Part shown: positions 6,059-50,046 of the stretch, one piece after another | Layout of the letters: every line of letters begins with the position of its first letter | Position numbering within the stretch: position 1 is the first letter of the stretch | Assembly: GCF_000143415.4 (NCBI RefSeq) | Contig: NW_003314263.1 | Coordinates: 4,413,008 to 4,463,058 of the forward strand | DNA from: Selaginella moellendorffii | Lineage: Eukaryota; Plantae; Lycopodiophyta | Length of the DNA stretch: 50,051 nt | Direction of reading: 5' to 3' | Notes under the pieces: model-generated | What the model saw: the letters and a program-made list of their open reading frames with translations, nothing else | Told to the model about the DNA's origin: nothing | The model's database searches: none | Position numbers and translations under genes: made by a program

Positions 6059-6070
6059 TGATCCTTTTGT

Positions 6071-13775: not shown

Positions 13776-14567
13776 TAGACGCATAAACCACAGCTCACAA
13801 CGCCGCTTACACAAGCAGCGCTCATTATGCTCAGCGGAACCAAGAACACGGCGCACAAAAATGATAGACCTAGGAATGAGTTCGAGAATTCAAAAATAAC
13901 ACACGCTTGAACGTCACATCAAATCCTCTGACAAACTAGATCTTATGATTCCTCTGACAAATTTCAAACAGAGTAGCTTCTAGACTTTGCTGTCGGAGGT
14001 TGAACTTTGTCACATCATGTCCTTGCCTCGATCCAGCTGTGCCATGTCAGTGATTCGAACTTTGCCATGCCGTGTCAGCGATCCGCGCCAAGATTATTCG
14101 CCGTGTAAAGGAATAATTATGCTGTGTGTGTACATCCATTTATGGCAGGCCACACGCCATTCAAAGAATAATGCTAGTCGGGCATATTTTGGTGCATTTT
14201 TGGGTTCAAAATTGCATGAGCCCACACGCTATAAAGTTTACCTGTACCAAAAATAGAAACAGCTTTATTTACTTGGGAATTTAAGTGGTTGAGGCATTTT
14301 TAAACTTACAAACAAATGCCCTACTTACATTCATTTGGTTGCTTAAAATTCAAAAATATTATAAACCTTTCTTTTTGCATTTTCAATGTTTTCAATTATG
14401 GTTTTTGATTTTCGCAGGACCAGCCTAGTAATCTATTTGCATCCCGTCATGTTTATAGCTAGCTTTCGTTTGTCCCCTTCGCTGGCCTGAGATACATCTG
14501 CTCGGAATCTGCCTCTTACGGCATTTGCCCAGAAAGGGCATCTTTCTTCACGCAGCATTTGCCACAT

Positions 14568-14600
14568 GTTTAGGGTTAGGGTTTAGGGTTTAGGGTTTAG
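14568..14600 (+). repeat. Interstitial telomeric tract inside the DNA transposon
   Basis: GTTTAGGGTTAGGGTTTAGGGTTTAGGGTTTAG. Confidence 0.85.
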
Positions 14601-18656: not shown

Positions 18657-18689
18657 GTTTAAATGTTATCTCACAAGCTCTATATGCAG

Positions 18690-20562: not shown

Positions 20563-20609
20563 GTAAAATTGACTTGTACCATTTTTTATGCTGACGTATT
20601 TCATTTCAG

Positions 20610-21472
20610 AGTCACAGCGAAGGTACTGTATCGTTTTTGATCTGAACGGTGTCCTTTTCTCCCATGAGCGTGGCTCGTCCTCGAATGTCATTGCACCCTC
20701 CAAAGCCTGCGGTCGCAAGTTGGTCAAAAGAGACAGATTCACATTAATCACACGGCAGAAACTGCGGGATCTAATAATGACCATGCGACACTTAAAACAG
20801 AGGGCCGGGTTCAATTTGCAATTGGCAGTTTGGACATCCATGATGCGCCACAATGCATTAACGTTGCTACAGATGATGCACGATCAGACGCGAGTAATAT
20901 TACTATTTGACTTTCTCCTAACGCAGGAGGATTGCTTGACTATGGTCCATGTGAGGGGTAGCAAGCCCATCTTCGTCAAGACAGAGGCTGTAGTGATGAA
21001 CCGGACTGCTAGCTCAAGTGAAATCCTCATCATCAATGACTCGCCGATTAAAACTGTAGCGAACACGCACACATATGCAGTGCACCCCATCTCTTGCAAT
21101 ATGGAAACTAGGGAGAAGAAACCGTATGTTCTAGGGGACCTTGCAAAACGGCTTGGAGCGATGGTGATAGAGAACCGGCCAGTCCAGGAGGTGGCTGCAG
21201 AAATCAACCAAATGGCAGATGGAACGGTATATCAGAAGCCATTTGATCGGACAGACACCAGTCATCATTTATGGCATGTATATTGTCTAGCCAAGCACTA
21301 TCCGCATCTCCATAATCTGCTCAACCAGATGGGTTCTTCGACCACTGAACATGAGCGTGGACGTATTAGAGAAGAGATGGCATTACTATTGGGTTTAAAT
21401 CCTGATAGTGTGGAAAGTGATGAAATTCCAAGATTATTGTATAGGCATTGGAGGCAAAAAATAACAGTCTGA
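20610..21472 (+). CDS. FCP1/NIF-like HAD phosphatase domain (terminal exon)
   Basis: IVFDLNGVL (HAD motif I-like), AVWTSM, ILIINDSPIK. Preceded by acceptor TTTCAG ending at 20609. Confidence 0.72.
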
Positions 21473-21993
21473 GATGGCATGTATTTATTTAAAAATGTAA
21501 CTTATTATGGCATGGGGTTCCATGCCATTGTATTAATATTAAAAGACAATTCTTTGAGAGGATTTCCATTATACTAGAAGTGTTACAGCATGTTATTCGA
21601 AGTCTACGAAGTTGTTTTATTAATAAGGGGAAAGTAAAGATTGAATGGGGACTTGGGCTCCACCTAGACTCGGAGCAACTGAGCCAATATTAAAAGGATG
21701 GAAAGAAATTGGACGACGATGACAAGGAGAAGAGAGAGGTGAAGCAGTGGCAGGGGGAGGAGAAGTGATTGAGTAGACATTTCCTTGTTTAAAATAAAAT
21801 GGCATGTGCCTCAATGCAATTGAATTTTGTTATATTTATATACTATATAAAGGTTTGGAAACCTTATTTTACAAGTGGGATAATGACAATTCCCACTTTA
21901 ACGAAATAGAGCTTTGCTGAGCTTCCCGAGCGCTTCCCGAAGCTCCTTCAGTGTAAAATCCATCTTCAATGAGTCGTGCCACTCATGGGGGAT

Positions 21994-23816
21994 TGTAAGG
22001 AACCAACTCGCTGAAGTGTCGTAGGCTAAAGGAACCCCAAAAGCATGACCAAAATGACAAAGAGTTCATCGGATGGGACCAAGTCGAAGATCGAGTTCAA
22101 GACCGACTCTAGGACCGAGTTCGAGATAGAGTCCGGAATCGAGTCCGAGACCAACTCGGGGACCGAGTTCAAGTCCGAGTTCGAGACCGAGTTCGAGACG
22201 GAGTCCGAGATCCGAAATCGGGTCCGAGACCGAGTCCGAGGTCGAGTCCGAGGTCGGGTCCGAGATCGGGTCCGAGATCGAGTCTGAGATCGAGTCCGAG
22301 ACCGAATCCGAAGTCGGATCCGAAATCGGGTCCAAGATCAAGCCAGAGACTAAGTCCAAATACTAATACGGGTCAAGGGGTGAAAGCCCAAAGCGTGCGT
22401 CTCCCAGGGGGGGGGGGCTGTGGGGGGTTCCAAAAGTATAGTAGGGATAGTGAAGTTTAGGAACTAGTCTTGAAGGAACTCTCCAGTGGTGCTTCCCAAC
22501 TGACTTGAGGTTGAGACTGGGGCCAAGGGGCCTTGGGTGGGAGTGAGCATGGGCTTGAGTGGTGCCGGAGGGGCCACCCAGGGAAGTGCTCAAGAGCAGC
22601 TCCCACTCCCGAAAAGGAAACCGACTGCGGTGCTCCCGGCTCATGTGGAGTGGTGCCCCACTTGAGTACCTTGTGGCTCATTGGTCCTCACCCTTCCTAG
22701 GGGCTTGGGCCTTCCCTTAGGAATGGAAGTGGGGGGGTAGAGGTACCCATACCGGGCCGCTAGGCCATGGTGTTTCGCCAACCTCAAGTCTTGGTGGAGA
22801 ACGATAGAGGCCAACGAAGGACCGGTGGCCACTTGGGAAATGATGAAGGCGAGGATCCGCGCAACTTACGTTCCTCCGAATGCTACTCTGCATCTAAGGG
22901 ACGAGCTGAGTAGGCTGAAGCAGACCGGAACCATTCAGGAGTATGTGAATGGGTTTATGGCAAAGAGGATACTTGTCATAGACATAGGGGATATGGATGC
23001 GTTCCATGCCTTCATATCAGGTTTGCAAACCTGGGCTCGTGGCGAAGTGATGCGGCGGAACCCGACCAACTACAAGGAAGCGTTGGATGCAGCTATCAAG
23101 GTGCATTTCAACGATAACCTGCAAAAGGGGAACACGACTGGGTCGGGATCCACGTTTAGCAAAGGGACCAAACCAAGGGGAACGTTTAGCAGAGGGAAAT
23201 TCAAGAAGAGTTTCTTTAAGAATGAGTCCTCGGGGTTCCGGAAAGGCAGATCCGGTGGCCAGCGAGCGAGTACGTGGGGGAGTCAAGCGAAAAGAGAAAA
23301 ACCCACGGATAAGAAGGTCAAGTCATATAGCAGCATGGAAAACAACGTATGCTACAACTGCGGTGAAGCGGGACACTTCTCGAGGGAATGTCCCTACCCG
23401 AAGAAGGCTAGAGCCAATATGGCCATCAAGTCGGGTGAAGTCCAAACTGAGGTATGTGATCCAGTCCCTAACTCAAAGTTACTCATTACACGAGCAACTT
23501 TGGTAGAGAGTCGTTTGCAACATCTACTAGCCCTCCAAGGGAAGCTCGGAGGTAGCTTTGTTAAGATCCTTATTGACACGGGTGCTTCGGATAATTTTGT
23601 GGTTGCAGACATAGTCCGGCAAGCCGGACTAACGGTGCAGCGGCTAGGCGAACCAAGGACTATAGAGTTTGTTCAAGGTAGCCAAAGCACCGATGAGGTA
23701 CTTCGACAAGCGAGAGTCGAAGTGGGGACTTGGAAGGTGGACATGGATTTCACTGTGTTAGACATGGCGGGATTTGACGTGATCTTCGGAATGGACTGGT
23801 TCAATCGATTCGTGGC
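21994..23816 (+). mobile_element. Truncated Ty3/Gypsy LTR retrotransposon (5' part) nested in LINE copy 2
   Basis: Starts TGTAAGG where LINE homology stops. Contains a gag-protease ORF and is cut off by return to LINE ORF1 sequence. Confidence 0.8.
22075..22360. repeat. 6/12-bp tandem microrepeat (GAGTCC/GAGATC/GAGACC)
   Basis: Directly visible; responsible for spurious low-complexity ORFs. Confidence 0.85.
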
Positions 23817-23835
23817 CGCTCCTGTACTTCTGTGA
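22825..23835 (+). CDS. Gag-aspartic protease (truncated)
   Basis: LSRLKQTGTIQEY (retrotransposon gag), CYNCGEAGHFSREC zinc knuckle, LIDTGASDNF protease site, DVIFGMDW. Confidence 0.9.
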   Translation: MATWEMMKARIRATYVPPNATLHLRDELSRLKQTGTIQEYVNGFMAKRILVIDIGDMDAFHAFISGLQTWARGEVMRRNPTNYKEALDAAIKVHFNDNLQKGNTTGSGSTFSKGTKPRGTFSRGKFKKSFFKNESSGFRKGRSGGQRASTWGSQAKREKPTDKKVKSYSSMENNVCYNCGEAGHFSRECPYPKKARANMAIKSGEVQTEVCDPVPNSKLLITRATLVESRLQHLLALQGKLGGSFVKILIDTGASDNFVVADIVRQAGLTVQRLGEPRTIEFVQGSQSTDEVLRQARVEVGTWKVDMDFTVLDMAGFDVIFGMDWFNRFVAAPVLL

Positions 23836-24558
23836 GACATCCATCCCTGTGAATCCCCTCAACGGCAAAAGTGCTTGGGATAATTCCCCGCAAGCCTTCC
23901 TGACTTGTAACTGGCCCGAGACCCTCACGAAGCTCCTGAACTCCAGCCAATGACCAAGCTAGTGGGTGAGGGGAGGTAGCTTCGTCCTCTCCACCACTCT
24001 CAGTGGGCACCTCGTCTCTGGCTTGGCTTTTACTTCCAGCTTGTTCCAGGACCTAGCCATCCCCCAGCTCTGAAACATCCACCACTTCTATCCCGTGGTT
24101 CTCGTCCTGCTAGGTTGCTTCCTTGCGTGGCTCGCTTGCTGCCTTGCACAGCAATGTTCTGGCCGTTGATACAGAGGGCCCTTTCCTGTCCTGGCTTGCT
24201 GCTGTACATGTGCCAGAACCCTGACCTTGTAACAGGCCTCCTCGTGGGAGTCGAATGCTGAGGCCCCTGCCTCACCCTCCACAACCTTGAGAGCTCAGTT
24301 TGATGGGCGTGGATGCTGTGATTCCCCTGTGGCTGTTCTCCATGCTGCTGACAGGGGAGTGAATACACAGCAGAAGCAAAAAAAGGGGAACAATACTTCC
24401 CTAAATCTCATGGCGGATGCCCCAGCCGACGGAGATTGCATGCTCTCCCCTGGGCACTCTTCTACCTTTGGCTGTGCCTCCGATCACGGCAGCCATGGTA
24501 CTGGGCGCCTTCCTCCACTTCCTCCCCAAAAAACGTCCAACATTAGGGTTTTTTTTTC

Positions 24559-24807
24559 GAGATCTCGCCGGATTGCAGCACCGTGGGGTGTCTTTGACCC
24601 TAAACGCCTAAATGCACCTAAACCCTAAACCCTTTAAACCCTAAAATTTAAACCCTGAACCTACTTAACAACTTAGGGAATGGTTCTTCAATCTGGATAT
24701 ACTCACCATATATATCTACACATTGCTTTAGGGTTTAGGGTTTTGGTTTTATAGTTTTAAGGTTTAGGGTTTACCAGTATAGGGTTTAGTGTTTAGGATT
24801 TAGGCGT
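24559..24807. repeat. Internal inverted partial copy of the telomeric unit plus divergent degenerate telomere tracts
   Basis: 24559-~24625 is the reverse complement of 47159-47222, followed by CCCTAAA variants to ~24660, a ~65-bp spacer, and TTTAGGG variants ending TTTAGGCGT. Confidence 0.88.
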
Positions 24808-24820
24808 GATCCTCTTGTGT

Positions 24821-27130
24821 GGCTTCGGCAAGAGCAAATGTAGACAATCTATGCTATCTCCAACTTGCCTCGAGTCAGTGTAGAGCCTCACCACTGGGGG
24901 CTGTGAGCTAGATCGGGGCCTCACACTTAAGGACCAAGCTGGTGAAGATGGGAGTGAAGCTCTAGGCTTGTTTGTAAGGTCTGACAAGCATCTATGGGCA
25001 AACTTTAGTGTCTGGAGTGGTTGTTCCTTGCTCAGCCCTAGGGCCATGACTTAATGGTCAATGTCCCTGGAGATCTCCTAGCTTGGTTATGACCCTGAGC
25101 AAGGGATTATGGACTCACCTTCCAGTGAGGCCTTCATGTTGATCCCACAGGACAAAAGTGCGTCCATGCTAGGGCCCTGTTCCTTTCTATTCTTGGTTGT
25201 TCTGGGTGGCATAGACTTAAGTTCTCCTGTCTCACACCCTAGCTCTACTGCTGCTGCACGTGCTGCTGCTCTAGTGGTGACTCCTGACGTGACCCTAGTG
25301 TGCCGCTCCTGTGCTTCTGTGAGACATCCATCCCTGCGAATCCCCTCAACTACAAAAGTGCTTGCAATGATTCCCTGTTAGGATTCTATCCCTTACACCC
25401 TAAGCCAACTGGCTAAAGGGGTGATCACTTGATTGTAGGGCCCTTTCCTTATCCTATTATCCTGACCTAGTGCCTAACAATCCTCCCCTCGTCAAGGAAT
25501 GATCGTCCGCAATCATACTTAGGCCACCATCCGGTCACCATGGTCCTTCTCTTAGGGTCTACCAAACCTTGGTTCTCCCTCTAGATCCACCATGTTGAAT
25601 ATTCCTTCAGAATATTCCTGCCCCACTTGTCAGCCACGAGAATCGAACTGGGCTCCAATACCAATGTTATGATCCGGCGCAAAAAGACAGAGATCTAGTC
25701 ACCCTAGACTATACTACGCCACCTCTTGAGGTTCCTCACCACCCAACCACCCCCGAACTACCTCAAAAGCTCCTCAAACTCATCCATGGTAGACACTGGT
25801 GGTTTCTTATCCGCAACATGGGACTCCTCAAGCCAATTCCACCATCGAAGACCCGCATCACGCAAAACCATCGGAATAGCCACTAAAGCCTCTGCATCTG
25901 GAGTTCCTCTAGTAGCCAAGAACTTCTTCACATTGGCTAGCCAAGCGAGACACTCATCCACACCACCATCACCGGAAAAAGTTGGAATCTTGAGTCGATC
26001 TACCAAAGAAGGCTTACTTGGAGCGCTACTCCGTCCAGCCTCGAGTGCCTCGACACACCCACGCATGGTATCCATCATGCCATGCATCTCGTCTTGCATC
26101 TCTTGCTGATTTTTATTAAGGGCTCGCAGCTCATGAACCACATCTTGAATGGTCCAAATTTCTGCAGCTTCGTCGGCACCATCGTCGGCACCACCATCGA
26201 CAATAGGATTCCAGCGTTCAACTTGGTCGGCCATCGCAACCAATGCTCCTAGACTATGCTACACCACCTCTTGAGGTTCCTCACCACCCAACCACCCCCG
26301 AGCTACCTCAAAAGCTCCACTGCGCCGCCGCTCCACTGTGAGCCCTAGGGTAGGTTAAGTCCCCTACCCTAACATGCCTTAATATACCCTTGAGCCTCCC
26401 TTTGACCGATGTTGACCATGTAGTCAAAGCTGGTGCCTAACATTCCCCACAAGCCTTTCTGACTTGTGACTAGCCTGAGACTCTCACAAAGCTCCTATAC
26501 TCCAGCTAGTGACCAGGCAAGTGGGTGAGGAAAGGTAGCTTCGTCCTCTCCTCCACTCTCAGTGGAAACTTCGCTTTTGGTGTGGCTTATACTTCCAGCT
26601 TTTTCCAAGACTTGGCCATCCCCCAACCTAGAAACATCCACCACTTCTATCCCATTGTTTTCATCCTGCTGAGCTGCTGCTTTGCGTGGCTCACTTGCTG
26701 TCTTGTGCAGTAGTGTTCTGGCATTGATACAGAGGCCCCTTTCCCATCCTGGCTTACTGCCGTGTGTGTTCTAGGACCCCGACCTTGTAGCAATCCTCCT
26801 CGTGGGAGCCAAATGCTGAGGCCCCTACCTCGCACTCTATGACTGTGAAAGTTCAGATTGATGGGTGTGGATGCCGTGACTCTATTGCGGCTGTTCTCCA
26901 TGCTTCTGACAAGAGAGTGAGTACACAGCAAAAGCAAAAAAAGGGAAATGATGCTTCCCTGAATCTCACGACAAATGCCCCCACCGACAGTAGCAAGTGT
27001 GGGGAGATTGCATGCTCTCCCCTGTGCGCTCTTCTACCTCTAGTTGCACCTCCTATCACGACAGCCATGGTACTAGGTGCCTTCCACCACTGCCTCCTCA
27101 AAAACTGTCCAATATTAGGGTTTTTTTACC
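24821..27130 (-). mobile_element. LINE copy 3: 5' end/ORF1 fragment, interrupted by an LTR-type insertion
   Basis: 24821-25375 and 26448-27130 match ~45745-46970; decayed. Confidence 0.88.
25376..26442 (-). mobile_element. Small non-autonomous LTR-retroelement derivative (TRIM-like) with a gag fragment
   Basis: Termini TGTTAGG..CCTAACA; 5-bp TSD TTCCC (25371-25375, 26443-26447). tRNA-iMet-like PBS TGGTATTGGAGCC (25651-25663,-), PPT GAGGGGAGGA (25481-25490,-), gag-like LKIPTFSGDG..WL..WW (25758-26243). Confidence 0.8.
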
Positions 27131-27147
27131 CAATCTGGCAAGATCAC

Positions 27148-27525
27148 TGAACGTGTATGTACACCCCCCATATCCCAATGGGACTAATACAAAAATTGGG
27201 TGTGCCACCCTCTCAATGAGCTACTCTACATGATCCTCTTGTGTTGCAGCTGAACCTAGTCCTGGAGTAGAAGTGGATGTGGTCGTCTGAATCAAATCGT
27301 ATCGATATCCAAGTCTCCCCCACGAGCTAAACGTAGAACAAAGTCTAGGGGGCACCACTGCCAGTGAATCTCGCCACCTACCATTCTGCCGAAGCAGGGG
27401 AGCCACCAGGACCTCCACTCCTTGAGTTGCCTCGGTTTTTCCTGCTCTTTCAGGATGGTGTAATGAAAACACACTACTGCAAGAGTGAGTCTCCACCATG
27501 ATGCCACCACCACCGATATCCTCAG
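27148..27525 (-). mobile_element. LINE copy 4: 3'-end fragment in tandem with copy 3
   Basis: Matches 39436-~39810. Separated from the copy 3 5' end only by CAATCTGGCAAGATCAC (27131-27147). Confidence 0.9.
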
Positions 27526-29640: not shown

Positions 29641-32533
29641 ATGGAGAAGGTGCAGGCTCGAATCGAGCTTCTTGAGCCGCAGATCCAAGCGGCTGGGAAA
29701 TCTTTTCTCTCTGCCCTTCAGAGTGGCAATCAATCTCTGGCGGAATATTGGCTGAAGGAGAAAGAGCGGCTGCAGAAGAAGGAAGAGCAGCTGTGGGAGG
29801 AAAAACTCTTCCTCCTCAAATGTAATGGTAAGTGATTTGGGGCGTTTTGCTGTGTGTTTTGGATATCTGTGGCTATGGCTGCTTTCCGTTGGATCTAGCT
29901 TCAATTCGTTTTTATTTTAGGTTGCTGGCTATGGTGGCTTTTGGCTATGCTGCCGGCTATGGCGGCTCCCTTGTGGATCCTTCTATGGCTGTTGAAACCC
30001 ATGTGTTTTCTGTTGATAGTTTTTTCTTCCAGATCTAATACTTGTTTTGTTCTGAATGTTGCAGTGCCCCATGAAATCGGTGGATATGGTTTGTTTCCTT
30101 GCATGCGCCCCTTGTTTTCTCTTTGATCTGTGCATGCATCCATGTCGGAAGTCCAGTCCTAGTGCGCCATGAAAGCGGCAGATGTCAGCCATGATTTCGT
30201 CACTGTTGGATTTGGTGATTGTGGTTGGTTATTCAATCTTGCGTTCTACTAAGAGTTTCTCTCTGGGTGATCCTCCAAAGTTCCCTTGTTTGTTCCCTTG
30301 CGGCATGTAGATCTTCTGCTTGTCGTTTAAGCCAGATGTTTCTTGCGTTTCCTCTGCTTAAAATCCCCTCGCTTCTCACTGCAGACAGCTCTTGTGTCTT
30401 TTCGTTCATGTAACTAGCGATTTGTTTCCAGGTCCGTCTTTTGCTTTACCTGAGCTAACTTCGAGCGATATGGCAAGTTTGGATTGCTTTCTGGAGGGCA
30501 AGGCTGGCATACCCCGCTATCGTGACACGAATATTCCGCGATTTGGTGACAGGCCGAGCTTGTTGCTGCATGGCCTACTAGCACACGACACTGAAAACTT
30601 CGACAAGTTCGTGAGCAGGGGTAGCAGGTTTTTATTGGTGCCAGGAACAAGTGGAGCAGGAAAAACCAGGACTCTCTATGCTCACCTGGCGAAGAACTTT
30701 GGTTTTTACTTCATTTCCAATGACCTGGGGAATGGCGGGTCTGCAGACTTGAGGGAGGTGATTGGTATACTGGCAACGTATCTGGGCGCGGATCAAGTTA
30801 AGAACTATACTATAACTACCTTTATGGTCACTGTGCTGCTGCTGGTCAGGATAGTGGTCTTCCTCTACTGCAAAGGAAAGGATATAACTCCTGAGAAGTG
30901 GCTCATGTTACAGGTCGGGTGCCAGAGGCTGGAACAGGACATGAAACCATTGAAATTGGATCCTTTCGCTGCTTGCACTCGGTTGGCTCTCGGCAGATAT
31001 GGGCCTGTCCTCCATGGCTCGTTAGTGGGGATTGCAGGTTTACTGGGTCAGGCCAAAAATGCCCTTTCAAAGTTGCTGGGAGGACAGCAGTTACCCCTGT
31101 TGGTAGTTGATGAGGCACAGGAGCTGGTTAAGCTGTATGCCGGACAGTTCCGTACAAATATTGAACCCTTCAAGGACCGACCATTGGCAAAGCCAGTGTT
31201 GGAAACTTTGCTCTACCCAGGCAACGAATCTCCAATTCATCATGTTGTATATGCTGGAACGGGCTTTCTTCTGAGCTTCAGCCGTTTGGAATTCAACAAC
31301 TCGGTGGGGAAACCGTTCGTCAAAGATGACGTGTACGAAGGTCTTGGTAGCTGGACAGATTGGAAGCAGATGGCAGCCTATTCCTGTTGTATTCTTGGGA
31401 CAGCTTGGGATGCTGAAGCTCAGGAGACAGTGAAGAATGAGATATTTCCCTATTTCAGGGGTCGGTTTCGCCCATTTGCGACATTGCTCGAGGAGGTGAT
31501 TAGGAGGGGCAAGCACATCCGATGGGTTTGGAACGACGTTTTTATAGGACTGACAGCTCGCCAAGGAATTCCAGGGATACAAAAGAGCTACTACAGGATA
31601 CTTGCAGAGGTAGCAAGTGGACGAAGAGGGCTGTTGGGGGAGGTGGATATTCATTTCTTTGTGGACTTGCTGCTCAAGGTGACCGTGCAGTACTTCTACT
31701 TTGGGTGGTCGTTCACGTGTCCAGTTTATGGTGATGAGCAGGAGAATGATTTACCTTTGACTCTTTTGGAGGTTGCCATAGGAAGGGTCTACGGAAAGCA
31801 AATGGTTATAATTGACGAGCCTCTTATGCTGGTGGCGATGCACAACTACTTTTTGGACGAAAAGAAGATCACTGGAAATATGCTGGACACCCTTTATGCT
31901 CTGAACAATCCTTCCACAGGCAACTGGTGGGAGCATCTGTTTCCGCTGGAGATAAAGGATTTGTGGGAAAAGCACGAGGGGAAACTGGATCAGTTTGAGC
32001 TGTTTCATGATTTGGACCTGACACAAAATTTGGAGGCTTTGAAGAGCAAGAAGAGTCGTATTATGGAAGGCTCTATCTTTTACTTGGATGGGGCGCCAAT
32101 GCCACCGGTGGTGATCTATAAGGCGAACAAAAACTACACTTGCCATGACTATTTGGCAAGTGATGTGCCTGGTTGCATGTTTTTGGTGGCCGAGCATGCT
32201 GCAGGTTGTGACCTCATGTTCAGAATTCAGTTTGAGGACCATACCATCGTATGGGTTAGTGTGCAACTCAAGCTGAGGAAGATCTTGCCCAATGCTTATG
32301 ATGCTGTTTGCAAGGCAGAACCATCACCAAAATATACTTGCAGGGGAGAGATGTTGTGCCTGTTGGTTGCATATCCAGCATCAGTGAACCATCCACCAGT
32401 GGAGAAACAGAAGATTGATGGGCAGACTAGATCTGTGGTTACAGTAGACAGGAAGAACGCCCACAAGTTTATTTCACTGGACCATTTGAAGAACCTTGAT
32501 ATTTTGAAAGTGGAGGAACGAATGATATTTTGA
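29641..32533 (+). CDS. Crinkler-like protein: helical N-terminal header + P-loop NTPase + restriction-endonuclease-fold domain; join(29641..29827,30432..32533), 762 aa
   Basis: GTAAGT donor at 29828 and TTTCCAG acceptor ending at 30431 join in frame. Walker A GTSGAGKT, Walker B LLVVDEAQ, RGRFRP, IDEPL and a C-terminal CDLMF..VQLK nuclease-like motif. Confidence 0.75.
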
Positions 32534-39282: not shown

Positions 39283-39371
39283 AAACCCTAAACCCTAAAC
39301 CGATATCTGACGTGTTTAGGGTTTAGGGTTTAGGGTTTAGGGTTTTAGGGTTTAGGGTTTAGGGTTTAGGG
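39283..39371. repeat. Interstitial telomeric tract with inverted start
   Basis: AAACCCTAAACCCTAAAC, 13-nt spacer CGATATCTGACGT, then about 8 TTTAGGG units. Confidence 0.92.
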
Positions 39372-39543
39372 TTTAGGCGCGTTTAGGCGTTTAGGGTCAA
39401 AGGCACCCCGTGGTGCTGCAATCCGGCGAGATCGCTGAACGTGTATGTACATTCCCCATGTCCCAATGGGACTAATACAAAAAATTGGCGTGCCGCCCTC
39501 TCAATGAGCTACTCTACGTGATCCTCATATGCCGCAGCTAGAC

Positions 39544-42500
39544 CTAGTCCTGGAGTAGAAGTGGACGTGGTCGTCTCGAGCGAATCATGTCGATGTCCAA
39601 GTCTCCCCCATGAGCTGATCTTAGAACAGAGTCTGGGGGGCGCCACTGCCAGCGAATCTCGCCACCTCCCAATTTGCCGAAGCATGGGAGCCACCTAGAT
39701 CTCCGCTCCTCGAGCTGCCTCGGTTTCGCCTGCTCTTTCAGGATGGTGTAGTGAAGACGCACCGCTGCAAGAGTGAGTCTCCACCATGATACCACCACTG
39801 CCGATATTCTCGCTTGCTACCCATCAAAGCGACAGTGGTTCCGTGCCTCCCAAAGTGCCTGCAGTCCTGTTGCCCTCCAAATGGACCAGCGCTCATGGCC
39901 CAACGCCTCCCAGATGGACATCCCAACTTCAGCCCCTGTCACGTCCCACCGGACTCGCATGTTCCATCGGTGCCGTCCGTAGCAGCGGATACGCCTCCAA
40001 GCTGGACCAATGGCTGGGCCTCTAGCTCCCTCAAACCAGTGGAGGATATCCCCACTCCGAGCCTCAAACTCTGGAATGTCGCCGAGTTCCTGCGTCGCCT
40101 TGAAGATCTGTCGCCAAACTTCTCTTGCCACGTCACATTCCCATAGGACATGTCGCGTTGTCTCCAGCTCGCCACACTCCTTACACCGTCGGCATGCTTC
40201 TTCCTGGAACCGCTGTCCTACCGGCAGCCCGTTATTTGCCACCAACCAAGAGGTGGCCTTGACTTTCTCCTGTACCGGTAGTTTCCAGAACGCAAGCGTG
40301 TTGCCCACCACCTGATTAGCTTCAACTCCTTGCTCGATCCATTTCTTCCAGAGCTTGGGGATCTCCCCTCGGGCCTCCTCCCTGCCGGTCAAGAGACCAT
40401 CCCTTGCTTCCTTGACGCCGAAGGAGAAGAAGCTTCTCGCTCCTCGTTTCCATGCTGCGGGGTCCCAATCTAGATCCTCGATGAGCTGCTGTCGCCACCA
40501 TCTAAGAATGCCTTCCCCCTCTAGTGCTGCCAACGATTGAACCACCACCGACTGCTTCGGAGCCTGTCGTATTACTCGAATCCTACCCTTGACCTCGTCA
40601 TCCGTCACCATCGGCATGACCTGTTCGTCCCCTGCTGGCAACAGCATGTCGCCTCTCAAGACTCGAAAAGGACGCCCAACATTTTGGTCTGGAGACACAA
40701 CGAACCATACCTCCACATCCCTGTCCTCCCAAGCTGGTGTTGGGGCCGTAAACGCCCGTGTCCAGGCCCCCAAGCTAACTCGTTCCCTATCTGGCTCCAC
40801 GTCCCGTTGCAGAGCCACAAAGTCTCCAGATTTGAGACAACGCCTAGGCCAGAGCTGCCCCTGCTTCGCCTCACTCACAGCTCTGATAATGCGAAGAAGA
40901 TCAAGGTGGACTTTCCTCCACCGTCCCGGGTTAAAGACCTGCATATGCCTCGTAGTCTTCCTCCTGTCCTTGTCCAGAACCCGCACCAGTTGCTTGAGAG
41001 TTCGGAAGCCTGCGCTATGTAGCTTTCTCCAGATTGTGTAGTGGTCCTCCCTGCCCAGCGTCCTGTCATCCAGTTTGAAGAGGTCGTTGAAGAACAGGGG
41101 CTGGTTCAGCCAGTCCTCCGCTCGCCCTAGCAATTCCCTGCTGACTGGAAACGCGCTCCATAACCGGAGAAACCCCTGGACTAGAGTGCCGCCCTTGACT
41201 ACTTGTTTCGGCCCCTCGGCAAAGAGCCAACGTGGATCTTCTTCCCACGGTCTTGCAGTGTTGTGCTTGGGCCGGATTGCCAACAAGTTCTGCCTAAACA
41301 TGAGTCTCCAAGGTTGATTACCTGGTTGAAGGCCCATGAGGAGGATTTTGTACCGTAGCGCCTTCGCCATGTTGCTTGGATCGATTACTCCAAGTCCTCC
41401 CAAGACTCGCGGACATGCTGTAGATTGCCACGCGACCTTGGCCATGCTCCTCCCTGTGACCAGAGCGCCCCGCCACAAATACTGACGGACCATCGTGCGT
41501 ACCTTTCTAAGAGTGCGTTCTGGAACAGGCCAGATGGAGAGGTGGTACCAGATGCCGGGCAGAATGATGCTCCTAGCGACCACCACTCTCGCTGGCAAGC
41601 CGAGTTTCCGGGGAGCCCACTTCTGGATTGACGTTCGTACCCGTCGGAGCAAGGTGTCATCCTGAAGTGCTGCACTGAACCGAGTACCAACCTGGATCCC
41701 CAGGTACCTAGCGTCTTCTCCTGGTTTGAGCCACTGGAAGCCGATGTCCTGCCCCCAAGATTCAATGCCTGGTCGCCCCCAATTTATGCCCACTGATTTG
41801 TTCCAGTTAATTGCTGCACCAGCCGCGAGGTTGAACGTCTCCAATGCCTTCTTAGCTGCATCCATGTTCTCCTTAGTCGCAAGTAGGAACAAGGCAGTGT
41901 CGTCCGCAAAAGCACCATCAAGGAGTTCCCGAGACACCCTTGTGGTTCCCGGAAGTTGCTGTCTCGCAGCTGGCAGTGTGAGTCCTTTAATGCGTCCGCC
42001 TTCCGCTAGAAACGTGCCCAGGGCCTCAGCCACAATCAGAAAAAGATAGGGTGCTAGTGGACACCCTTGGCGTACTGAACGTCCCAGCTGGAAACTCGGT
42101 CCCGTCTCTCCATTGATTGTGACTCTGCTTGCGGCTCCTCGGTACAGTAACGAAATCCTAGCGACCATCTCTCTCGGGATGCCGATCGTGTTCATGCACT
42201 CCTCTAGGAACCTCCAGTCCACCCGATCGTAGGCCTTCTCGAAGTCCAATAGCCATGCTGCAGTTTGTTGGTTAGAGATCTCTGCCCATCTCTGAGCCAG
42301 CAGGTACGTCCAGATGTTTTCTGCGATTTGCCGCCCTGGAACAAACCCTGTCTGCTGCTCCCGGATGATCAGCGGCATGACAGCTTGGAGCTTGAGGGTC
42401 ATTGCTTTGGCATAGACCTTGTAGGACGTGTTGAGCATGGTGATTGGCCTCCAATTCTTCAGCTCCTGCAGGTCCCCCCTCTTTGGAATAAGCGCAATCT

Positions 42501-43383
42501 GGCCCTCAAGGATCTCACGGGGCAAGGTCCCATCACGTTGAGCATCCCACCATGCTTGTAGCAGCAGCGGGCCTATGGTCTCCCAGTGCTCCTCGAAGAA
42601 AATGGGCAAGAGGCCATCGATACCTGGCTGCTTGTCATTGCTGAGCTTCCTGAGCGCTTCCCGAAGCTCCTCCAGTGTGAAGTCCGTCTTCAGTGAGTCG
42701 TGCCACTCATGCCGTATGCGAGATGAGGCGTAAATCCGGTCCAGTCTCGACTGGGAGGATACTGTCTGTCGCCTTGTAAAAGGGTGAGTGTGAGGTGCGA
42801 ATCCCGCAGCATGCTGAAGGTCCATGAGCCCCAGTATGTCCATGAGCTGACTCCATTGCTTCTGTTCACGTGGCTGAATTGTTACCTGCATACCCCTGCG
42901 ATCACAGACGTCCTCGACCATGTTGAAATCTCCCAGGACCAGCCATTCATCTGCTTGCCCCTGGGCAGACTGTAGCACACTCAGCCAGAATTCTGCACGT
43001 CTCCCTTTCTTCGTTGGTGCATAGACGTTGATTATCCCCACCCGTCCAAAGTGGAGGTGAAGGACAAGCAATTGAGCCTTTCCTGGGACGAGGACAAGGT
43101 GGTTTCGTACCTGAGCAGACCATTTGGTTGAGACTACCACTGCTGTGCCCCCTCCTGGTCTGGCCACTGCTTGCGTGGCCGGGTTCCACCAGAGCCGTCC
43201 CCTCATTCCAAAGGTGTAGTCTGGGGCCACAGTCATTTTGTGCTCTTGCAAGCATAGGATGTCGATATCTCCTTCTAAGCTGATCTCCCGGATGTGGGAC
43301 TTGAGCTGCGCCCTTTTGTTGAGTCAACTGCCGGTCCAGCTGAGTCCCCGGCAGTTCCAGGTGACGAGCGTGAGGGTTGTCAT
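39544..43383 (-). pseudogene. LINE ORF2: APE endonuclease - reverse transcriptase - zf-RVT, with two premature stops and an internal deletion
   Basis: ATG at 43383; TWNCRG, LCLQE, NVYAP, GDFN, SRLDR; WRPITMLN, DFEKAYD, RQGCPLAP, FADD; CRRC..H..W.C. TGA at 43324-43326 and TAG at 39817-39819 (a Gln codon in copy 2). Confidence 0.93.
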
Positions 43384-46300
43384 GGAGCCACGTACTTCCA
43401 AGAAAGTGAGGAGTTACGGGGTCTCGCCCTCCATTCTGTGGAGATGGTCCACACCGCAGTCATCTTCCCCCTGTGCTTCGTCCAGGAGAAGCCACGGACA
43501 GTGTACTTCGCAAAGCCCGTCCACTCAGTGATAGCACTCTCCATGCGTGTGTGGTAGTCTCCAATAGTGACGACCTCTGGGAAGGCTGTGATCCCGCGGC
43601 ACATCAGCCAGTCTCCCGCCTCTGTGGGACTTAATTCCCGCTTAGGGGGAATCCACCTGACCGCCATTCCTACTGTTCGAGGGAGGACCGGCTGGAAGCC
43701 ATCTCCTTCGACATCCGTAATAGGTCCCTCGAACAGTTTGGGCTGTGAGGATGAGCCCAAGAGTGGTGGGGCGACCGGGAAGCGAATGTGGGGAGCTTGG
43801 TCCGAAGGGCGTGCCTTCAAGATCCGCTCCTGCTCTGCAGGTAGCTCAAACGGCTTCTGGGATGCCAACCTGTTCCGCTTGACTGAGCAGGCCTCCTCCC
43901 GGTGTCCAGCACGCTGACAAAAGTTGCATCTAGGTTCTGAGTTCTCCGTTTGGATCCTGATATACTGGCCTAGCACTGCGATCTCTGTCGGGATTTCCGC
44001 CGGGGCTGACACGAAAACTTTGAGGCGGATGGGACCTAGAACACCCTCTGCTTCTACAGTGTCGAGGCCGGCCGCTATCTGGCCGATACTTCCTTCAACC
44101 AGCTCCTGTATCACCAATGTGATCCGCATTTCCATGGGAACGTCCCACAATGCAATGTTCACTGGAAAGCTCCCGCCCTTGAGACGAGCCTGGTCCTCTG
44201 CGGTGAACCTTGGGATCCATGGGTGGAATGACACCGCCCAATTCTCGTCAATGAGGCCATGCATGGCCTCCGCCTGAGACCGTGCCTCCTCTGTCTCAAA
44301 GACGACTGTGTAGCAGCCCTTTCCATGTGGCAGCATCATCTTCATGAGGATTCCCTGGCCTAGCGTTGCATTGATCCAATCGTTAGCCATGCGACCTGTT
44401 GGAAACTTCCCTCTGAAAACAGCGATCAGGGCCTTCTTGCGGAGTTCCTCTTCCTTCTCTGCTACTGCTCTTTGCAGAGTCTCAGCCAGCTTGACAGGGA
44501 CTGCCTTTCCTCTTGTGTCGTCGTGGATCAAGTCACTTCCGCCTTCCCCTGCTGCTGCCACCTTGTGGACTTCGGCCTGACCAGGTGTTCCCCAGTTCAC
44601 GTTATGTGAGGTGTGCTCCTTGTTAACATCACTGTTCCCGTCCGAGGAGTGCAGCGCTTCCACCACCTTTCTGCAGCCCCGAGTCTTCCTCACTCTCGAT
44701 TGGGCTTTTGCCACTTGCTCCGGGGTGTCAACCTCCTGGTTCTGGTGCACCCGAGACTCTGTCCTCTTGTCTGGCAGAGCGTGCTCCTCCTCGAGAAAGG
44801 CTTCAACTGTGTTTGTCCAGGCCGGGTCCTCCTTGGCAAGTCTCAGAGTTTTAAGCTTCCGCCGCGTTGCTCGCTTCACTTTCTTCTTCTCACGTTTGGT
44901 CTTCCTCTTGTTGAAGGCATCACGGTCCTGGAACTGAAGTGTGCCATCTGACTGTTCCTCCAGTGAGCGCTCCGTCTCTGGCTCCGTTTCTGGCTCTTCG
45001 AGTCCCTCTTCAACTGTTGGTGTTGGCATGGTATCCAACTTGCCACCTTGCTCTTGCGCCCATGCATCAAAGAGATCCGCTTGCTGTGTGACCACTGCCT
45101 TCGTGATTAACTCTTGAGCTTGACGCAGTGCAGGTCCCAACACGAGGTCCTCCCCCAAAGGGTTCAGGTCCAGCTCTCTGATTGTGCACATCAATGTTGA
45201 CTGGAGTTCTTTGCGTACTGGAAGCGGAGAACTTTGGATCCTTTCCTCAAAGTGGCGAGGGTCCCAGACCAGCATCCCTGCCTTGTCGAGTCGTGGGAAT
45301 GGAGAGGGAAGCGACTCCTTCTGCTCCTCATGTGGTGTTGTGGGAGAGTCCGGATCTGATTTCCTCACTTGTTGCAAGTGCGCAGGGTCCACCTGGTGTG
45401 TTTCCTCCTGTACTCTCGCATGTACTGGATCAGGGATGAGCCCAGCCACGTCTGCAAGAGTTTCAGGGTGGGACGAGGGGTTCCCACCAGCTGGGCATGA
45501 ACTTGATGCATTCCCATAAGCAGGGAGTGTGCCAGCTGCCCAGTCCTTCCGAGTCCTGAGGTTCTCTGTTAGAATTGCGAGAGCTGCACGACGTGCATCC
45601 CACAGAGAGATGTTCTCCACGTCTACCCCATCCTCTAGTTGGTGAGTTAGCTGCGAGACTTCTTGCTGGATTCGCTGTGCCGACTCTCGACACACCTGTT
45701 CCGTGAACTGCTCACTGTTCCAAAAGACTATACCACCGCTTGCAGGCTTCGGCAAGACCAAGTGTAGACAATCTGTGCTATCTCCACCCTGTCTCAAGTC
45801 CGTGCAGCGCCTCGTCACTGGGGGCTGTGGGCTGGATCGGGGCCTCACACTTGAGGAACGAGCTGGTGAGGCTGGGAGTGAAGCTCTGGGCTTGTTTGTC
45901 AGGTCCGACAAGCATCTGTGGGCAAACTTCAGTGTCCGAAGCGGCAGCTCCTTGTTCAGTCCTAGGACCACGGCTGAACGATCTGGCTCTCTGGAGATCT
46001 CTTGGCTTGGTTGTGCCTCTGAATGGGGGATTGTGAACTCACCTTCTAGTGAGGCTTCCATGTTGAGCCTGCAGGACAGAAGTGCACCGTCCTGTTTCCC
46101 TCTGTTTTTGGACGTTCTGGGTGGGGCAGACTTGAGTTCTCCTGTCCCACGTCCTGGCTTTGCTGCTGCTGCACGTGCTGCTGCTCTAGTGGTGACGCCT
46201 GCCCTGACCCTGGTGTGGCGCTCCTGTACTTCTGTGAGACATCCATCCCTGTGAGTCCCCTCGACGGCGAAAGTGCTTGGGATAATTCCCCGCAAGCCTT

Positions 46301-46781
46301 CCTGACTTGTAACTGGCCCGAGACCCTCACGAAGCTCCTGAACTCCAGCCAATGACCAAGCAAGTGGGTGAGGGGAGGTAGCTTCGTCCTCTCCACCACT
46401 CTCAATGGGCACCTCGTCTCTGGCTTGGCTTTTGCTTCCAGCTTGTTCCAGGACCTGGCCATCCCCCAGCCCTGAAACATCCACCACTTCTATCCCGTGG
46501 TTCTCATCTTGCTGGGTTGCTTCCTTGCGTGGCTTGCTTGCTGCCTTGCACAGCAATGTTCTGGCCGTTGATACAGAGGGCCCTTTCCTGTCCTGGCTTG
46601 CTGCTATACGTGTGCCAGAACCCCGACCTTGTAACAGGCCTCCTCGCGGGAGTCGAATGCTGAGGCCCCTACCTCGCCCTCCACGACCTTGAGAGCTCAG
46701 TTTGATGGGCGTGGATGCTGTGATTCCCCTGCGGCTGTTCTCCATGCTGCTGACAGGGGAGTGAGTACACAGCAGAAGCAA
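43380..46781 (-). CDS. LINE ORF1 (long disordered N-terminus, RRM-like region, CCHC knuckle)
   Basis: Open for 1133 codons; CNFCQRAGHREEAC; its stop overlaps the ORF2 start (ATGA). First in-frame ATG is at 46745. Confidence 0.85.
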   Translation of the reverse strand: MLLLCTHSPVSSMENSRRGITASTPIKLSSQGRGGRGRGLSIRLPRGGLLQGRGSGTRIAASQDRKGPSVSTARTLLCKAASKPRKEATQQDENHGIEVVDVSGLGDGQVLEQAGSKSQARDEVPIESGGEDEATSPHPLAWSLAGVQELREGLGPVTSQEGLRGIIPSTFAVEGTHRDGCLTEVQERHTRVRAGVTTRAAARAAAAKPGRGTGELKSAPPRTSKNRGKQDGALLSCRLNMEASLEGEFTIPHSEAQPSQEISREPDRSAVVLGLNKELPLRTLKFAHRCLSDLTNKPRASLPASPARSSSVRPRSSPQPPVTRRCTDLRQGGDSTDCLHLVLPKPASGGIVFWNSEQFTEQVCRESAQRIQQEVSQLTHQLEDGVDVENISLWDARRAALAILTENLRTRKDWAAGTLPAYGNASSSCPAGGNPSSHPETLADVAGLIPDPVHARVQEETHQVDPAHLQQVRKSDPDSPTTPHEEQKESLPSPFPRLDKAGMLVWDPRHFEERIQSSPLPVRKELQSTLMCTIRELDLNPLGEDLVLGPALRQAQELITKAVVTQQADLFDAWAQEQGGKLDTMPTPTVEEGLEEPETEPETERSLEEQSDGTLQFQDRDAFNKRKTKREKKKVKRATRRKLKTLRLAKEDPAWTNTVEAFLEEEHALPDKRTESRVHQNQEVDTPEQVAKAQSRVRKTRGCRKVVEALHSSDGNSDVNKEHTSHNVNWGTPGQAEVHKVAAAGEGGSDLIHDDTRGKAVPVKLAETLQRAVAEKEEELRKKALIAVFRGKFPTGRMANDWINATLGQGILMKMMLPHGKGCYTVVFETEEARSQAEAMHGLIDENWAVSFHPWIPRFTAEDQARLKGGSFPVNIALWDVPMEMRITLVIQELVEGSIGQIAAGLDTVEAEGVLGPIRLKVFVSAPAEIPTEIAVLGQYIRIQTENSEPRCNFCQRAGHREEACSVKRNRLASQKPFELPAEQERILKARPSDQAPHIRFPVAPPLLGSSSQPKLFEGPITDVEGDGFQPVLPRTVGMAVRWIPPKRELSPTEAGDWLMCRGITAFPEVVTIGDYHTRMESAITEWTGFAKYTVRGFSWTKHRGKMTAVWTISTEWRARPRNSSLSWKYVAP

Positions 46782-47342
46782 AAAAGGGGAACAATACTTC
46801 CCTGAATCTCACGGCGGATGCCCCCGCCGACGGTAGCAAGTGTGGGGAGATTGCACGCTCTCCCCTAAGCGCTCTTCTACCTCTGGCTGCGCCTCCGATC
46901 ACGGCAGCCATGGTATTGGGCGCTTTCCTCCACGTCCTCCCCAAAAAACGTCCAACATTAGGGTTTTTTGCGCGCGCGCACACAATATACAATCCGGCGA
47001 GATCGCGGCGCCACTTTGTGCAATCCACATTCTCCGTGTGCTGTTGTCGAGACGGCGTGATCGAGAGCAAGGAGAGGAGGCAAGAGAATGAATTTTCATT
47101 CATTCGCGAGCGAGGGAGACGACAAGAGACAACCCGGTTTAGGGTTTAGGGTTTAGGGTTTAGGCGCGTTTAGGCGTTTAGGGTCAAAGACACCCCGCGG
47201 TGTTGCAATCCGGCGAGATCGCGGCACCACTTTGCGCAATCCACATTCTCCATGTGCCGTTGTCGAAACGGCGTGATCGAGAGCAAGTAGAGGAGGCAAG
47301 AGAATGAATTTTCATTCATTCGCGAGCGAGGGAGAAGACAAG

Positions 47343-47400
47343 AGACAACCCGAGACCGGTTTCGTCCTTTTTGGGACTCATCAGCCGGGTGTAGTCGTCT
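47343..47400 (-). ncRNA. Type I hammerhead ribozyme (minimal, palindromic stem III)
   Basis: RNA ACCCGG-CUGAUGA-GUCC CAAAAA GGAC-GAAA-CCGG-UC^UCGGGU: full catalytic core, 6-bp stem I, 4-bp stem II, GUC cleavage triplet (cut between 47354 and 47353). Confidence 0.92.
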
Positions 47401-47434
47401 AACGTCTACCCTAACCCTAGCTCGGCGCCGGCTC

Positions 47435-47462
47435 TACTTATATTCTGGCTCTGTCACGTGGC
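47435..47462 (-). promoter_or_regulatory. Candidate promoter of the telomeric unit (G-box + TATA)
   Basis: GCCACGTGAC (47453-47462) and TATAAGTA (47435-47442) lie upstream of the ribozyme on the same strand; motif evidence only. Confidence 0.35.
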
Positions 47463-47539
47463 GCGAGTCCGAGTGGCAGCCATGCGAAGTGCATGGCGGC
47501 GTTGGCTCGCGAGTATGCGAACGTAGCACAGCTGGTGTT

Positions 47540-50046
47540 GGGTTTAGGGTTTAGGGTTTAGGGTTTAGGGTTTTAGGGTTTAGGGTTTAGGGTTTAGGGT
47601 TTAGGCGCGTTTAGGCGTTTAGGGTCAAAGACACCCCGCAGTGCTGCAATCCGGCGAGATCGCGGCTTTAGGGTTTAGGGTTTACCGGTTTAGGGTTTAG
47701 GGTTTAGGGTTTACGGGTTTAGGGTTTAGGGTTTAGGGTTTAGGGTTTAGGGGTTTAGGGTTTAGGGTTTAGGGTTTAGGGTTTAGGGTTTAGGGTTTCC
47801 GGTTTAGGGTTTAGGGTTTAGGGTTTAGGGTTTAGGGTTTAGGGTTTAGGGTTTAGGGTTTAGGGTTTAGGGTTTAGGGTTTTAGGGTTTAGGGTTTAGG
47901 GTTTAGGGTTTAGGGTTTAGGGTTTAGGGTTTAGGGTTTAGGGTTTAGGGTATAGGGTTTAGGGTTATAGGGTTTAGGGTTTTAGGGTTTAGGGTTTAGG
48001 GTTTAGGGTTTAGGGTTTAGGGTTTTAGGGTTTAGGGTTTAGGGTTTAGGGTTTAGGGTTTAGGGTTTAGGTTTTAGGGTTTAGGGTTTAGGGGTTAAGG
48101 GTTTAGGGTTTAGGGTTTAGGGTTTAGGGTTTAGGGTTTAGGGTTTAGGGTTTAGGGTTTAAAGACACCCCGCAGTGCTGCAATCCGGCGAGATCGCGGC
48201 TTTAGGGTTTAGGGTTTCCCGGTTTAGGGTTTAGGGTTTAGGGTTTACGGGTTTAGGGTTTAGGGTTTAGGGTTTAGGGTTTAGGGGTTTAGGGTTTAGG
48301 GTTTAGGGTTTAGGGTTTAGGGTTTAGGGTTTCCGGTTTAGGGTTTAGGGTTTAGGGTTTAGGGTTTAGGGTTTAGGGTTTAGGGTTTAGGGTTTAGGGT
48401 TTAGGGTTTAGGGTTTTAGGGTTTAGGGTTTAGGGTTTAGGGTTTAGGGTTTAGGGTTTAGGGTATAGGGTATAGGGTATAGGGTTTAGGGTATAGGGTT
48501 TAGGGTTTTAGGGTTTAGGGTTTTAGGGTTTAGGGTTTAGGGTTTAGGGTTTAGGGTCTAGGGTTTTAGGGTTTAGGGTTTAGGGTTTAGGGTTTAGGGT
48601 TTAGGGTTTAGGTTTTAGGGTTTAGGGTTTAGGGGTTTAGGGTTTAGGGTTTAGGGTTTAGGGTTTAGGGTTTAGGGTTTAGGGTTTAGGGTTTAGGGTT
48701 TAGGGTTTGGGGGTTTAGGTTTAAGGGTTTAGGGTTTAGGGTTTAGGGTTTAGGGTTTAGGGTTTAGGGTTTAGGGTTTAGGGTTTAGGGTTTAGGGTTT
48801 AGGGTTTAGGGTTTAGGGTTTAGGGTTTAGGGTTTAGGGTTTAGGGTTTAGGGTTTAGGGTTTAGGGTTTAGGGTTTAGGGTTTAGGGTTTAGGGTTTAG
48901 GGTTTAGGGTTTAGGGTTTAGGGTTTAGGGTTTAGGGTTTAGGGTTTAGGGTTTAGGGTTTAGGGTTTAGGGTTTAGGGTTTCAGGGTTTAGGGTTTAGG
49001 GTTTAGGGTTTAGGGTTTCAGGGTTTAGGGTTTAGGGTTTAGGGTTTAGGGTTTAGGGTTTAGGGTTTAGGGTTTAGGGTTTAGGGTTTAGGGTTTAGGG
49101 TTTAGGGTTTAGGGTTTAGGGTTTAGGGTTTAGGGTTTAGGGTTTAGGGTTTAGGGTTTAGGGTTTAGGGTTTAGGGTTTAGGGTTTAGGGTTTAGGGTT
49201 TAGGGTTTAGGGTTTAGGGTTTAGGGTTTAGGTTTAGGGTTTAGGGTTTAGGGTTTAGGGTTTAGGGTTTAGGGTTTAGGGTTTAGGGTTTAGGGTTTAG
49301 GGTTTAGGGTTTAGGGTTTAGGGTTTAGGGTTTAGGGTTTAGGGTTTAGGGTTTAGGGTTTAGGGTTTAGGGTTTAGGGTTTAGGGTTTAGGGTTTAGGG
49401 TTTAGGGTTTAGGGCCTAGGGTTTAGGGTTTAGGGTTTAGGGTTTTAGGGTTTAGGGTTTAGGGTTTAGGGTTTAGGGTTTAGGGTTTAGGGTTTAGGGT
49501 TTAGGGTTTAGGGTTTAGGGTTTAGGGTTTAGGTTTAGGGTTTAGGGTTTAGGGTTTAGGGTTTAGGGTTTAGGGTTTAGGGTTTAGGGTTTAGGGTTTA
49601 GGGTTTAGGGTTTAGGGTTTAGGGTTTAGGGTTTAGGGTTTAGGGTTTAGGGTTTAGGGTTTAGGTTTAGGGTTTAGGGTTTAGGGTTTAGGGTTTAGGG
49701 TTTAGGGTTTAGGGTTTAGGGTTTAGGGTTTAGGGTTTAGGGTTTAGGGTTTAGGGTTTAGGGTTTAGGGTTTAGGGTTTAGGGTTTAGGGTTTAGGGTT
49801 TAGGGTTTAGGGTTTAGGGGGGGGGGTTTAGGGTTTAGGGTTTAGGGTTTAGGGTTTAGGGTTTAGGGTTTAGGGTTTAGGGTTTAGGGTTTAGGGTTTA
49901 GGGTTTAGGGTTTAGGGTTTAGGGTTTAGGGTTTAGGGTTTAGGGTTTAGGGTTTAGGGTTTAGGGTTTAGGGTTTAGGGTTTAGGGTTTAGGGTTTAGG
50001 GTTTAGGGTTTAGGCCTTAGGGTTTAGGGTTTAGGGTTTAGGGTTT
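47540..50046 (+). repeat. Telomere (TTTAGGG)n, variant-rich proximally
   Basis: About 2.5 kb of TTTAGGG running to the end of the sequence. Confidence 0.99.

Follow-up and report, generated by a model that had tools for sequence, protein, structure and literature searches.

The window analyzed here is a stretch of 50,051 nucleotides (nt) from Selaginella moellendorffii (assembly GCF_000143415.4, contig NW_003314263.1, forward-strand positions 4,413,008 to 4,463,058), which forms the right end of a chromosome. Its distal part contains a long interspersed nuclear element (LINE), copy 1, inserted into a small ribozyme-bearing unit that attaches to telomeric repeats, together with an uninterrupted unit in which the insertion site (target) is still empty. 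The open reading frames (ORFs), the 3' untranslated region (UTR) and the other features at this end are as follows, with positions counted from the first letter of the window.

39314-39418, minus strand: target unit, 3' tail consisting of degenerate C-rich telomeric repeats and the linker up to the target, 97% identical to 47542-47663
39419-39435: proximal copy of the target-site duplication, 17 nt, exact
39436-46989, minus strand: LINE copy 1, defective, 7554 nt with both ends full-length and no poly(A)
39436-39816, minus strand: 3' UTR of copy 1, 381 nt, directly adjoining the target
39817-43383, minus strand: ORF2 of copy 1, with apurinic/apyrimidinic (APE) endonuclease, reverse transcriptase (RT) and zf-RVT; its ATG overlaps the ORF1 stop
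42707-42711, minus strand: deletion junction, where copy 1 alone lacks 663 nt
43324-43326, minus strand: premature stop at codon 20 of ORF2
43380-46781, minus strand: ORF1 of copy 1, 1133 amino acids (aa)
46951-46989, minus strand: 5' end of copy 1, comprising a conserved CCCTAATGTTGGA core, a short run of A and a variable part that is probably untemplated
46990-47006: distal copy of the target-site duplication, 17 nt, exact
47007-47136, minus strand: remainder of the unit interrupted by copy 1, ending <=1 nt from the predicted hammerhead cut and followed by telomere repeats
47159-47539, minus strand: uninterrupted unit, transcribed, with the empty target at 47206-47222
47200-47227: 28-nt palindrome, imperfect, which includes the empty target and has the motif once on each strand
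47348-47390, minus strand: type I hammerhead ribozyme, 40.5 bits
47540-50047, plus strand: telomere array; two unit stubs within it carry the targets at 47647 and 48181

On the minus strand, the unit reads hammerhead, ~130 nt, target, short linker, and C-rich telomeric repeats. An earlier, sequence-only reading had proposed a perfect duplication around copy 1, an uninterrupted site just distal to it, and a target located in the ribozyme unit rather than in TTTAGGG itself. All 3 proposals are confirmed by the exact 17-mers on both sides of copy 1 and at 47206-47222, by the adjacent hammerhead, and by the position of the site, ~20 nt outside the telomeric repeats. Exact 17-mers start at 39419, 46990, 47206, 47647, and 48181, and decayed ones at 24559, 27131, and 6324 (1, 3, and 4 mismatches, respectively); allowing <=3 mismatches gives 7 matches in the window vs 0.05 expected. 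The empty target is covered by 13 RNA reads, whose direction fits the minus strand of the unit, assuming a stranded library of the usual type.

In view of its anatomy and of the literature, the unit most likely represents the 3' tail of the telomeric Penelope-like elements published for Selaginella. It has a hammerhead upstream of C-rich telomeric repeats, its 5' end faces the chromosome tip, and its 5'-truncated copies are capped by repeats. Endonuclease-less Penelope-like elements dock on the telomere overhang via such repeats beside a hammerhead (PMC8557442), and those of S. moellendorffii carry canonical type I hammerheads (PMC4209133).

As for the coding state of copy 1, the stop at codon 20 of ORF2 and the deletion through the endonuclease indicate that this copy is dead, because the deletion removes the last catalytic motif of the endonuclease (SDH) along with the linker. 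The missing 663 nt are present in all other copies compared, and read contigs of three runs also break at the deletion point. Pfam domains of ORF2, found both in copy 1 and in another genomic copy, L127, comprise an N-terminal APE endonuclease, an RT, and a C-terminal zinc motif (zf-RVT), and the L127 endonuclease (ORF2 from L127:13408) retains all APE catalytic residues. ORF1 of copy 1 has no direct Pfam match; its weak, distant homologs P0348 and P0349 bear DUF4283 and a zinc knuckle, DUF4283 being a plant L1 marker (PMC5203782). The 5' end starts with a telo-box-like motif (A run plus CCCTAA, 46951-46970), seen in all ten full 5' ends and possibly serving as an internal promoter. Twelve RNA reads share only the 36-nt stretch at 41087-41123 and differ on both sides of it; they probably stem from another transcript with a short similarity.

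The window contains 5 on-target events, namely, copy 1, an older plus-strand copy, and copies 2, 3, and 4. Features of the latter four are listed below.

3857-6323, plus strand: older LINE copy, 83% identity, 3' end at 6323 on target
6058-6240: rearranged part of the older copy, with two 13-nt target remnants (6073-6085 and 6183-6195)
6324-6341: 18-nt duplication, 3' side of inverted copy 2, at the same time flanking the older plus-strand copy on its 3' side
6342-24558, minus strand: LINE copy 2, opposite orientation, in pieces 6342-9537, 21914-21993, and 23812-24554, split by a DNA transposon and a long terminal repeat (LTR) element fragment
24559-24576: 18-nt duplication, 5' side of copy 2, followed by unit tail and telomeric repeats
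24821-27126, minus strand: LINE copy 3, 81-84% identity, 5' end intact, internally deleted, interrupted
27131-27147: target copy between tandem copies 3 and 4
27148-27523, minus strand: LINE copy 4, 3' end fragment, 87% identity

These copies are also where the sequence-only reading needs amendment. It had assigned independent copies to 6324-6341 and 24559-24576; both are on target, but they are the two halves of the 18-nt duplication of copy 2 and share a private C>A transversion. The supposed independent copy at 27131-27147 corresponds to a decayed target sitting between head-to-tail copies 3 and 4. Probable sites named at 6071 and 6181 do hold target remnants (6073 and 6183), each with 4 changes in 13 nt, but they belong to a tandem unit of ~110 nt and seem to be a single piece that was duplicated, representing one event at most. 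The sequence-only reading also overlooked the dead state of copy 1, the inversion of copy 2, and the existence of off-target copies.

Beyond the window, 7 published S. moellendorffii loci (L127-L133) were chosen by ORF1 similarity alone, blind to the flank. The closest protein match of the element is from S. moellendorffii (78%), and ORF1 matches of 72-96% all map to the published assembly of this species. Four of the 7 loci (L128, L130, L131, and L132) are on target and harbor eight LINE insertions and a non-coding companion; in these arrays the members follow one another head to tail, separated by the target, and two of the arrays still sit within the hammerhead unit. The other three (L127, L129, and L133) are off-target copies, the first two lying inside LTR elements. 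In total, the window and the seven loci have 13 on-target LINE insertions and one non-coding companion vs 3 off-target copies, and the target follows 8 of the 9 3' ends that could be scored. The claim of a sequence-specific LINE inserting repeatedly and independently thus also holds outside the window, and most copies do not have unrelated flanks, although the specificity is not absolute. The published loci may in fact over-represent dispersed copies, as telomeric arrays assemble badly. In the main read contig of run X5, the passage from target into LINE has a depth of 21 vs 18-20 for the element body.

In all on-target copies the 3' end directly adjoins the target, and no poly(A) is present. 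Target duplications are mostly 16-18 nt long, reaching 22-23 nt in L128 and L132. A fixed 3' end, 5' truncation, and target duplication are the marks of target-primed reverse transcription. The 5' junctions differ in all copies, as do the truncation points, and the identity of copies to a young natural copy ranges from 81 to 98.5%. That the family repeatedly targets one site in a telomere-attaching unit can be regarded as practically certain.

A sister family (68%) at L001 is not scoreable for the target since a DNA transposon hides its 3' end. Scanning metagenome contigs with the 18-mer gave chance bacterial matches only, none resembling the unit or the LINE, a protein search with the C-terminal 200 aa of ORF2 gave no matches, and a shorter RT query revealed no further Selaginella copies.

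How the site is chosen is suggested by the 3' junctions of normal and inverted copies, which occupy mirror positions in the palindrome. In element-sense letters, a single motif, GYGGTGYY|GCRATCY, fits both target orientations; it was drawn from these two orientations of the unit only. Nevertheless, the L127 site matches the motif at 13 of 15 positions, and its 16-nt duplication starts precisely at the bar. The L129 site also matches 13/15, exactly 16 nt before the boundary set by an empty homolog in L128. The background for 13/15 matches is 3-6e-5 per position. Taken alone, the left half is matched 7/8 at both sites, with a background of 0.002. Array-internal targets match only 10/15: their right half is perfect, and the 5 mismatches all fall in the left half. 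Because only the right half of the motif survives in a target preceded by a LINE 3' end, new copies are expected on the hammerhead side. Indeed, the hammerhead-side copy is the younger one in L128 (93 vs 85%), L130 (94 vs 89-91%), L132, and the window (87 vs 81-84%), while L131 is a tie. Inverted copy 2 sits at the last target of its array, where only the reverse motif remains. A motif present on both strands thus explains the inverted insertion, the age order in arrays, and the two 13/15 off-target sites. Judging from these sequence matches, the endonuclease probably reads a motif of ~15 bp; it is also the endonuclease that sets target choice in TRAS1, SART1, R1, and Tx1L (PMC1919474).

According to the proposed mechanism, the family would use target-primed reverse transcription to insert at a single position of the Penelope-like 3' tail. 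The endonuclease would read GYGGTGYY|GCRATCY and nick the opposite strand at the bar, which places the putative first nicks at 47222/47223 (plus strand) and 47205/47204 (minus strand). The freed 3' end would then prime on RNA that probably reads through into the target, and a second, loosely placed nick would follow 16-23 nt away. As the palindrome provides the motif once per strand, insertion could occur in either orientation. After insertion, an intact motif would be left on the hammerhead side only, and new copies would stack there, pushing older ones towards the telomeric-repeat tail. The last target of an array would retain only the reverse motif and could receive an inverted copy. A 1.7-kb non-coding companion with the same 3' end would use the LINE machinery. 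By renewing gene-free targets at chromosome ends, the Penelope-like element may also benefit the LINE; the sequence-only reading had proposed such a renewable safe site, which is reasonable.

Several observations touch on parts of this mechanism. The companion is a 1.68-kb sequence between two targets in L131 (8068-9748); it has ~36 nt in common with the LINE 3' end, resembles the LINE at its 5' start, and is absent from the window. Both unit stubs in the telomere array (47647-47666 and 48181-48200) stop 3 nt past the putative first nick. They look like one event duplicated in a ~530-nt block, and telomerase healing at LINE nicks is one conceivable origin of the ends at 47666 and 48200. Production of LINE RNA by the hammerhead cut of the unit was rejected as a rule: no array-internal 5' end has the 130-nt stretch from cut to target, and hence the LINE does not normally borrow the ribozyme.

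Among the other explanations, the one that survives best, though it appears improbable, is that RNA rather than the endonuclease leads the targeting. Here, the endonuclease would be weakly selective, and a poly(A)-less transcript would end in read-through target letters that pair at suitable nicks. Consistent with that, the family has no poly(A), and in each of the three off-target copies the flank next to the 3' end is target-like over its first 4-7 nt. Moreover, the off-target copy in L127 bears at its own 5' end 11 nt of the LINE 3' end and the full target (L127:9908-9947), a result of either 5' transduction from an array or a template jump onto read-through RNA; LINE RNA can therefore be contiguous with target sequence. 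However, two of the three off-target sites keep 7/8 of a left half that cannot pair. As these left halves lie beyond the pairing reach of 3' read-through RNA, base reading by the endonuclease is inferred. Array-internal targets, with their perfect right half, also seem not to be reused. RNA pairing may still assist priming alongside endonuclease reading.

Considerably less likely is that structure or location directs insertion, either through recognition of a hairpin or cruciform, or because a Penelope-like particle carries the LINE to chromosome ends. The target does fold as a hairpin, with a z of only -1.75, and the L129 site is palindromic too. Each of the seven published loci, off-target copies included, is located at a distance of 2.5-160 kb from a scaffold end and has its LINE 5' end directed towards it (orientation p 0.008); scaffold ends need not be chromosome ends. 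Against this possibility, reinsertion occurred in L130 where the outer arm had already been lost, the L127 site has the motif without a good hairpin, and off-target sites are found inside LTR elements.

Finally, multiplication of one or a few insertions, by segmental duplication or Penelope-driven recopying of a LINE-bearing tail, is largely refuted and very unlikely: subtelomeres duplicate readily, the unit with copy 1 stops at the hammerhead cut as recopied RNA would, and the 6073/6183 remnants look duplicated, which may account for single copies but not for the overall pattern, because every 5' junction and truncation point is distinct and ages span 81-98%, while one copy is inverted and an unrelated companion occupies the same nucleotide.

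Taken as a whole, a site-specific L1-type LINE in a Penelope-like tail with an endonuclease-read motif is the best explanation, and there is good reason to favor it. A number of points weigh against it, however. No LINE RNA reads were seen in 12% of one RNA run, and read contigs of X5 and X14 contain, among the matches listed, a few 3' ends with other flanks, which gives no genome-wide fraction. L133 is a real exception, as its right half matches 6/7 and its left half only 3/8. The motif test rests on three off-target sites, and array age comparisons use only partly matched element regions (the younger piece in L132 is 45 nt long). Lastly, the Penelope identity of the unit is likely rather than proven because no Penelope RT was found beside it in the loci analyzed (the window, L128, and L130, with a truncated unit).

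Apart from the family itself, the window shows how its copies were interrupted. A 12.4-kb DNA transposon within copy 2 (9538-21913) has 19-nt terminal inverted repeats, a 4-nt duplication (AGCT), and DUF7869 and NIF-like ORFs; its ends recur in or near the LINE in L001, L127, L130, L131, and L132. At 21994-23815, an LTR retrotransposon fragment (gag, protease, and a 12/24-nt repeat array) takes the place of ~3.5 kb of copy 2, and the same LTR family also interrupts L128 and L131. Two old telomere tracts at 24558-24820 point apart around a ~57-nt spacer, each joined to a unit tail or LINE remnant. Positions 2-608 hold a sister LINE (nucleotide identity ~65%) whose 3' end, likewise without poly(A), resembles that of the family but has a different flank, in which telomere-like repeats appear 30 nt beyond the 3' end. 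A 713-aa ORF at 30392-32533 has a weak AAA_22 match.

Regarding the relatives of the LINE family, the data point to a plant L1 lineage of APE type. Among the few references used, the RT is closest to L1 (E-value 1.6e-44 for human L1 ORF2p vs 5e-16 for R2), and its nearest relatives are L1s of mosses, ferns, and conifers (P0002-P0120, 33-43% identity). In an RT tree of plant relatives, built without Tx1 or flowering-plant references, copy 1 is placed on a long, unsure branch. These L1s share with the Selaginella family the two-ORF layout, the abutting ORFs, and zf-RVT. In contrast, those examined end in poly(A) and are dispersed, L123 and L124 representing one element with unrelated flanks; the Selaginella family shows neither poly(A) nor dispersed insertion. 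An Rfam search of the flanks of the moss relatives gave no matches. The relatives also have a hairpin loop in the endonuclease that is longer and dissimilar in sequence or form to that of the Selaginella family, which makes this loop a candidate determinant of target choice.

Target-specific APE LINEs have been reported from the Tx1 and R1 clades (PMC4640811). The literature search found no target-specific land-plant L1 and no description of a LINE/Penelope-tail pairing; a prior description is possible, as the 2007 Selaginella-element paper and Repbase were outside the search. A broader proposal, somewhat short of an even chance, is that in land plants an L1 lineage acquired a sequence-reading endonuclease separately from the animal Tx1 and R1 clades and no longer has poly(A). 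It would now take part in a chain of four levels (telomere, Penelope-like element, LINE, and non-coding companion) and belong to an undescribed plant radiation of site-specific LINEs. If true, this would mean a separate origin of target specificity and a new target class, the docking tail of a telomeric retroelement, with a precision so far described mainly for animal elements. Dispersed, poly(A)-bearing relatives at ~40% identity would offer a test of how an L1 endonuclease gains specificity, e.g., through the hairpin loop. The two-strand motif predicts the sites of inverted and off-target copies and the age order of arrays, all testable on one good assembly, and a plant LINE with a 15-bp preference could be of interest for site-directed insertion in plants.

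Known systems resemble the Selaginella family in part. Zepp of Chlorella, a green-lineage L1-related element, forms nested clusters, some at chromosome ends; it inserts into its own copies, whereas the Selaginella family uses the tail of another element. Members of the R1 clade (R1Bm, TRAS1, and SART1) have an endonuclease-defined site and a fixed 3' junction, and TRAS and SART reside at telomeres in opposite orientations. The R1 clade, however, cuts rDNA (ribosomal DNA) or the telomere repeat itself, while the Selaginella family avoids the repeat and inserts in the unit. The endonuclease-less Penelope-like elements of S. moellendorffii (Coprina/Athena type) share the anatomy of the target unit, including the 5' end towards the tip (PMC4209133, PMC8557442), and are probably the host of the LINE rather than the LINE itself. 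Spikemoss PLE-X elements, called the first rDNA-targeting elements of plants (PMC8557442), are likewise site-specific retroelements of the same genus, but they are Penelope-like, lack an endonuclease, and target 28S rDNA. With the Tx1 clade the family shares sequence-specific insertion in a multicopy target. Tx1L of Xenopus laevis is an APE LINE at a fixed site in another mobile element, Tx1D, with an endonuclease that reads ~10 bp (PMC1919474). It is an animal element with a DNA-transposon target, whereas the Selaginella family belongs to a land plant and enters a retroelement tail in both orientations; the two are alike in mode, with no kinship implied.

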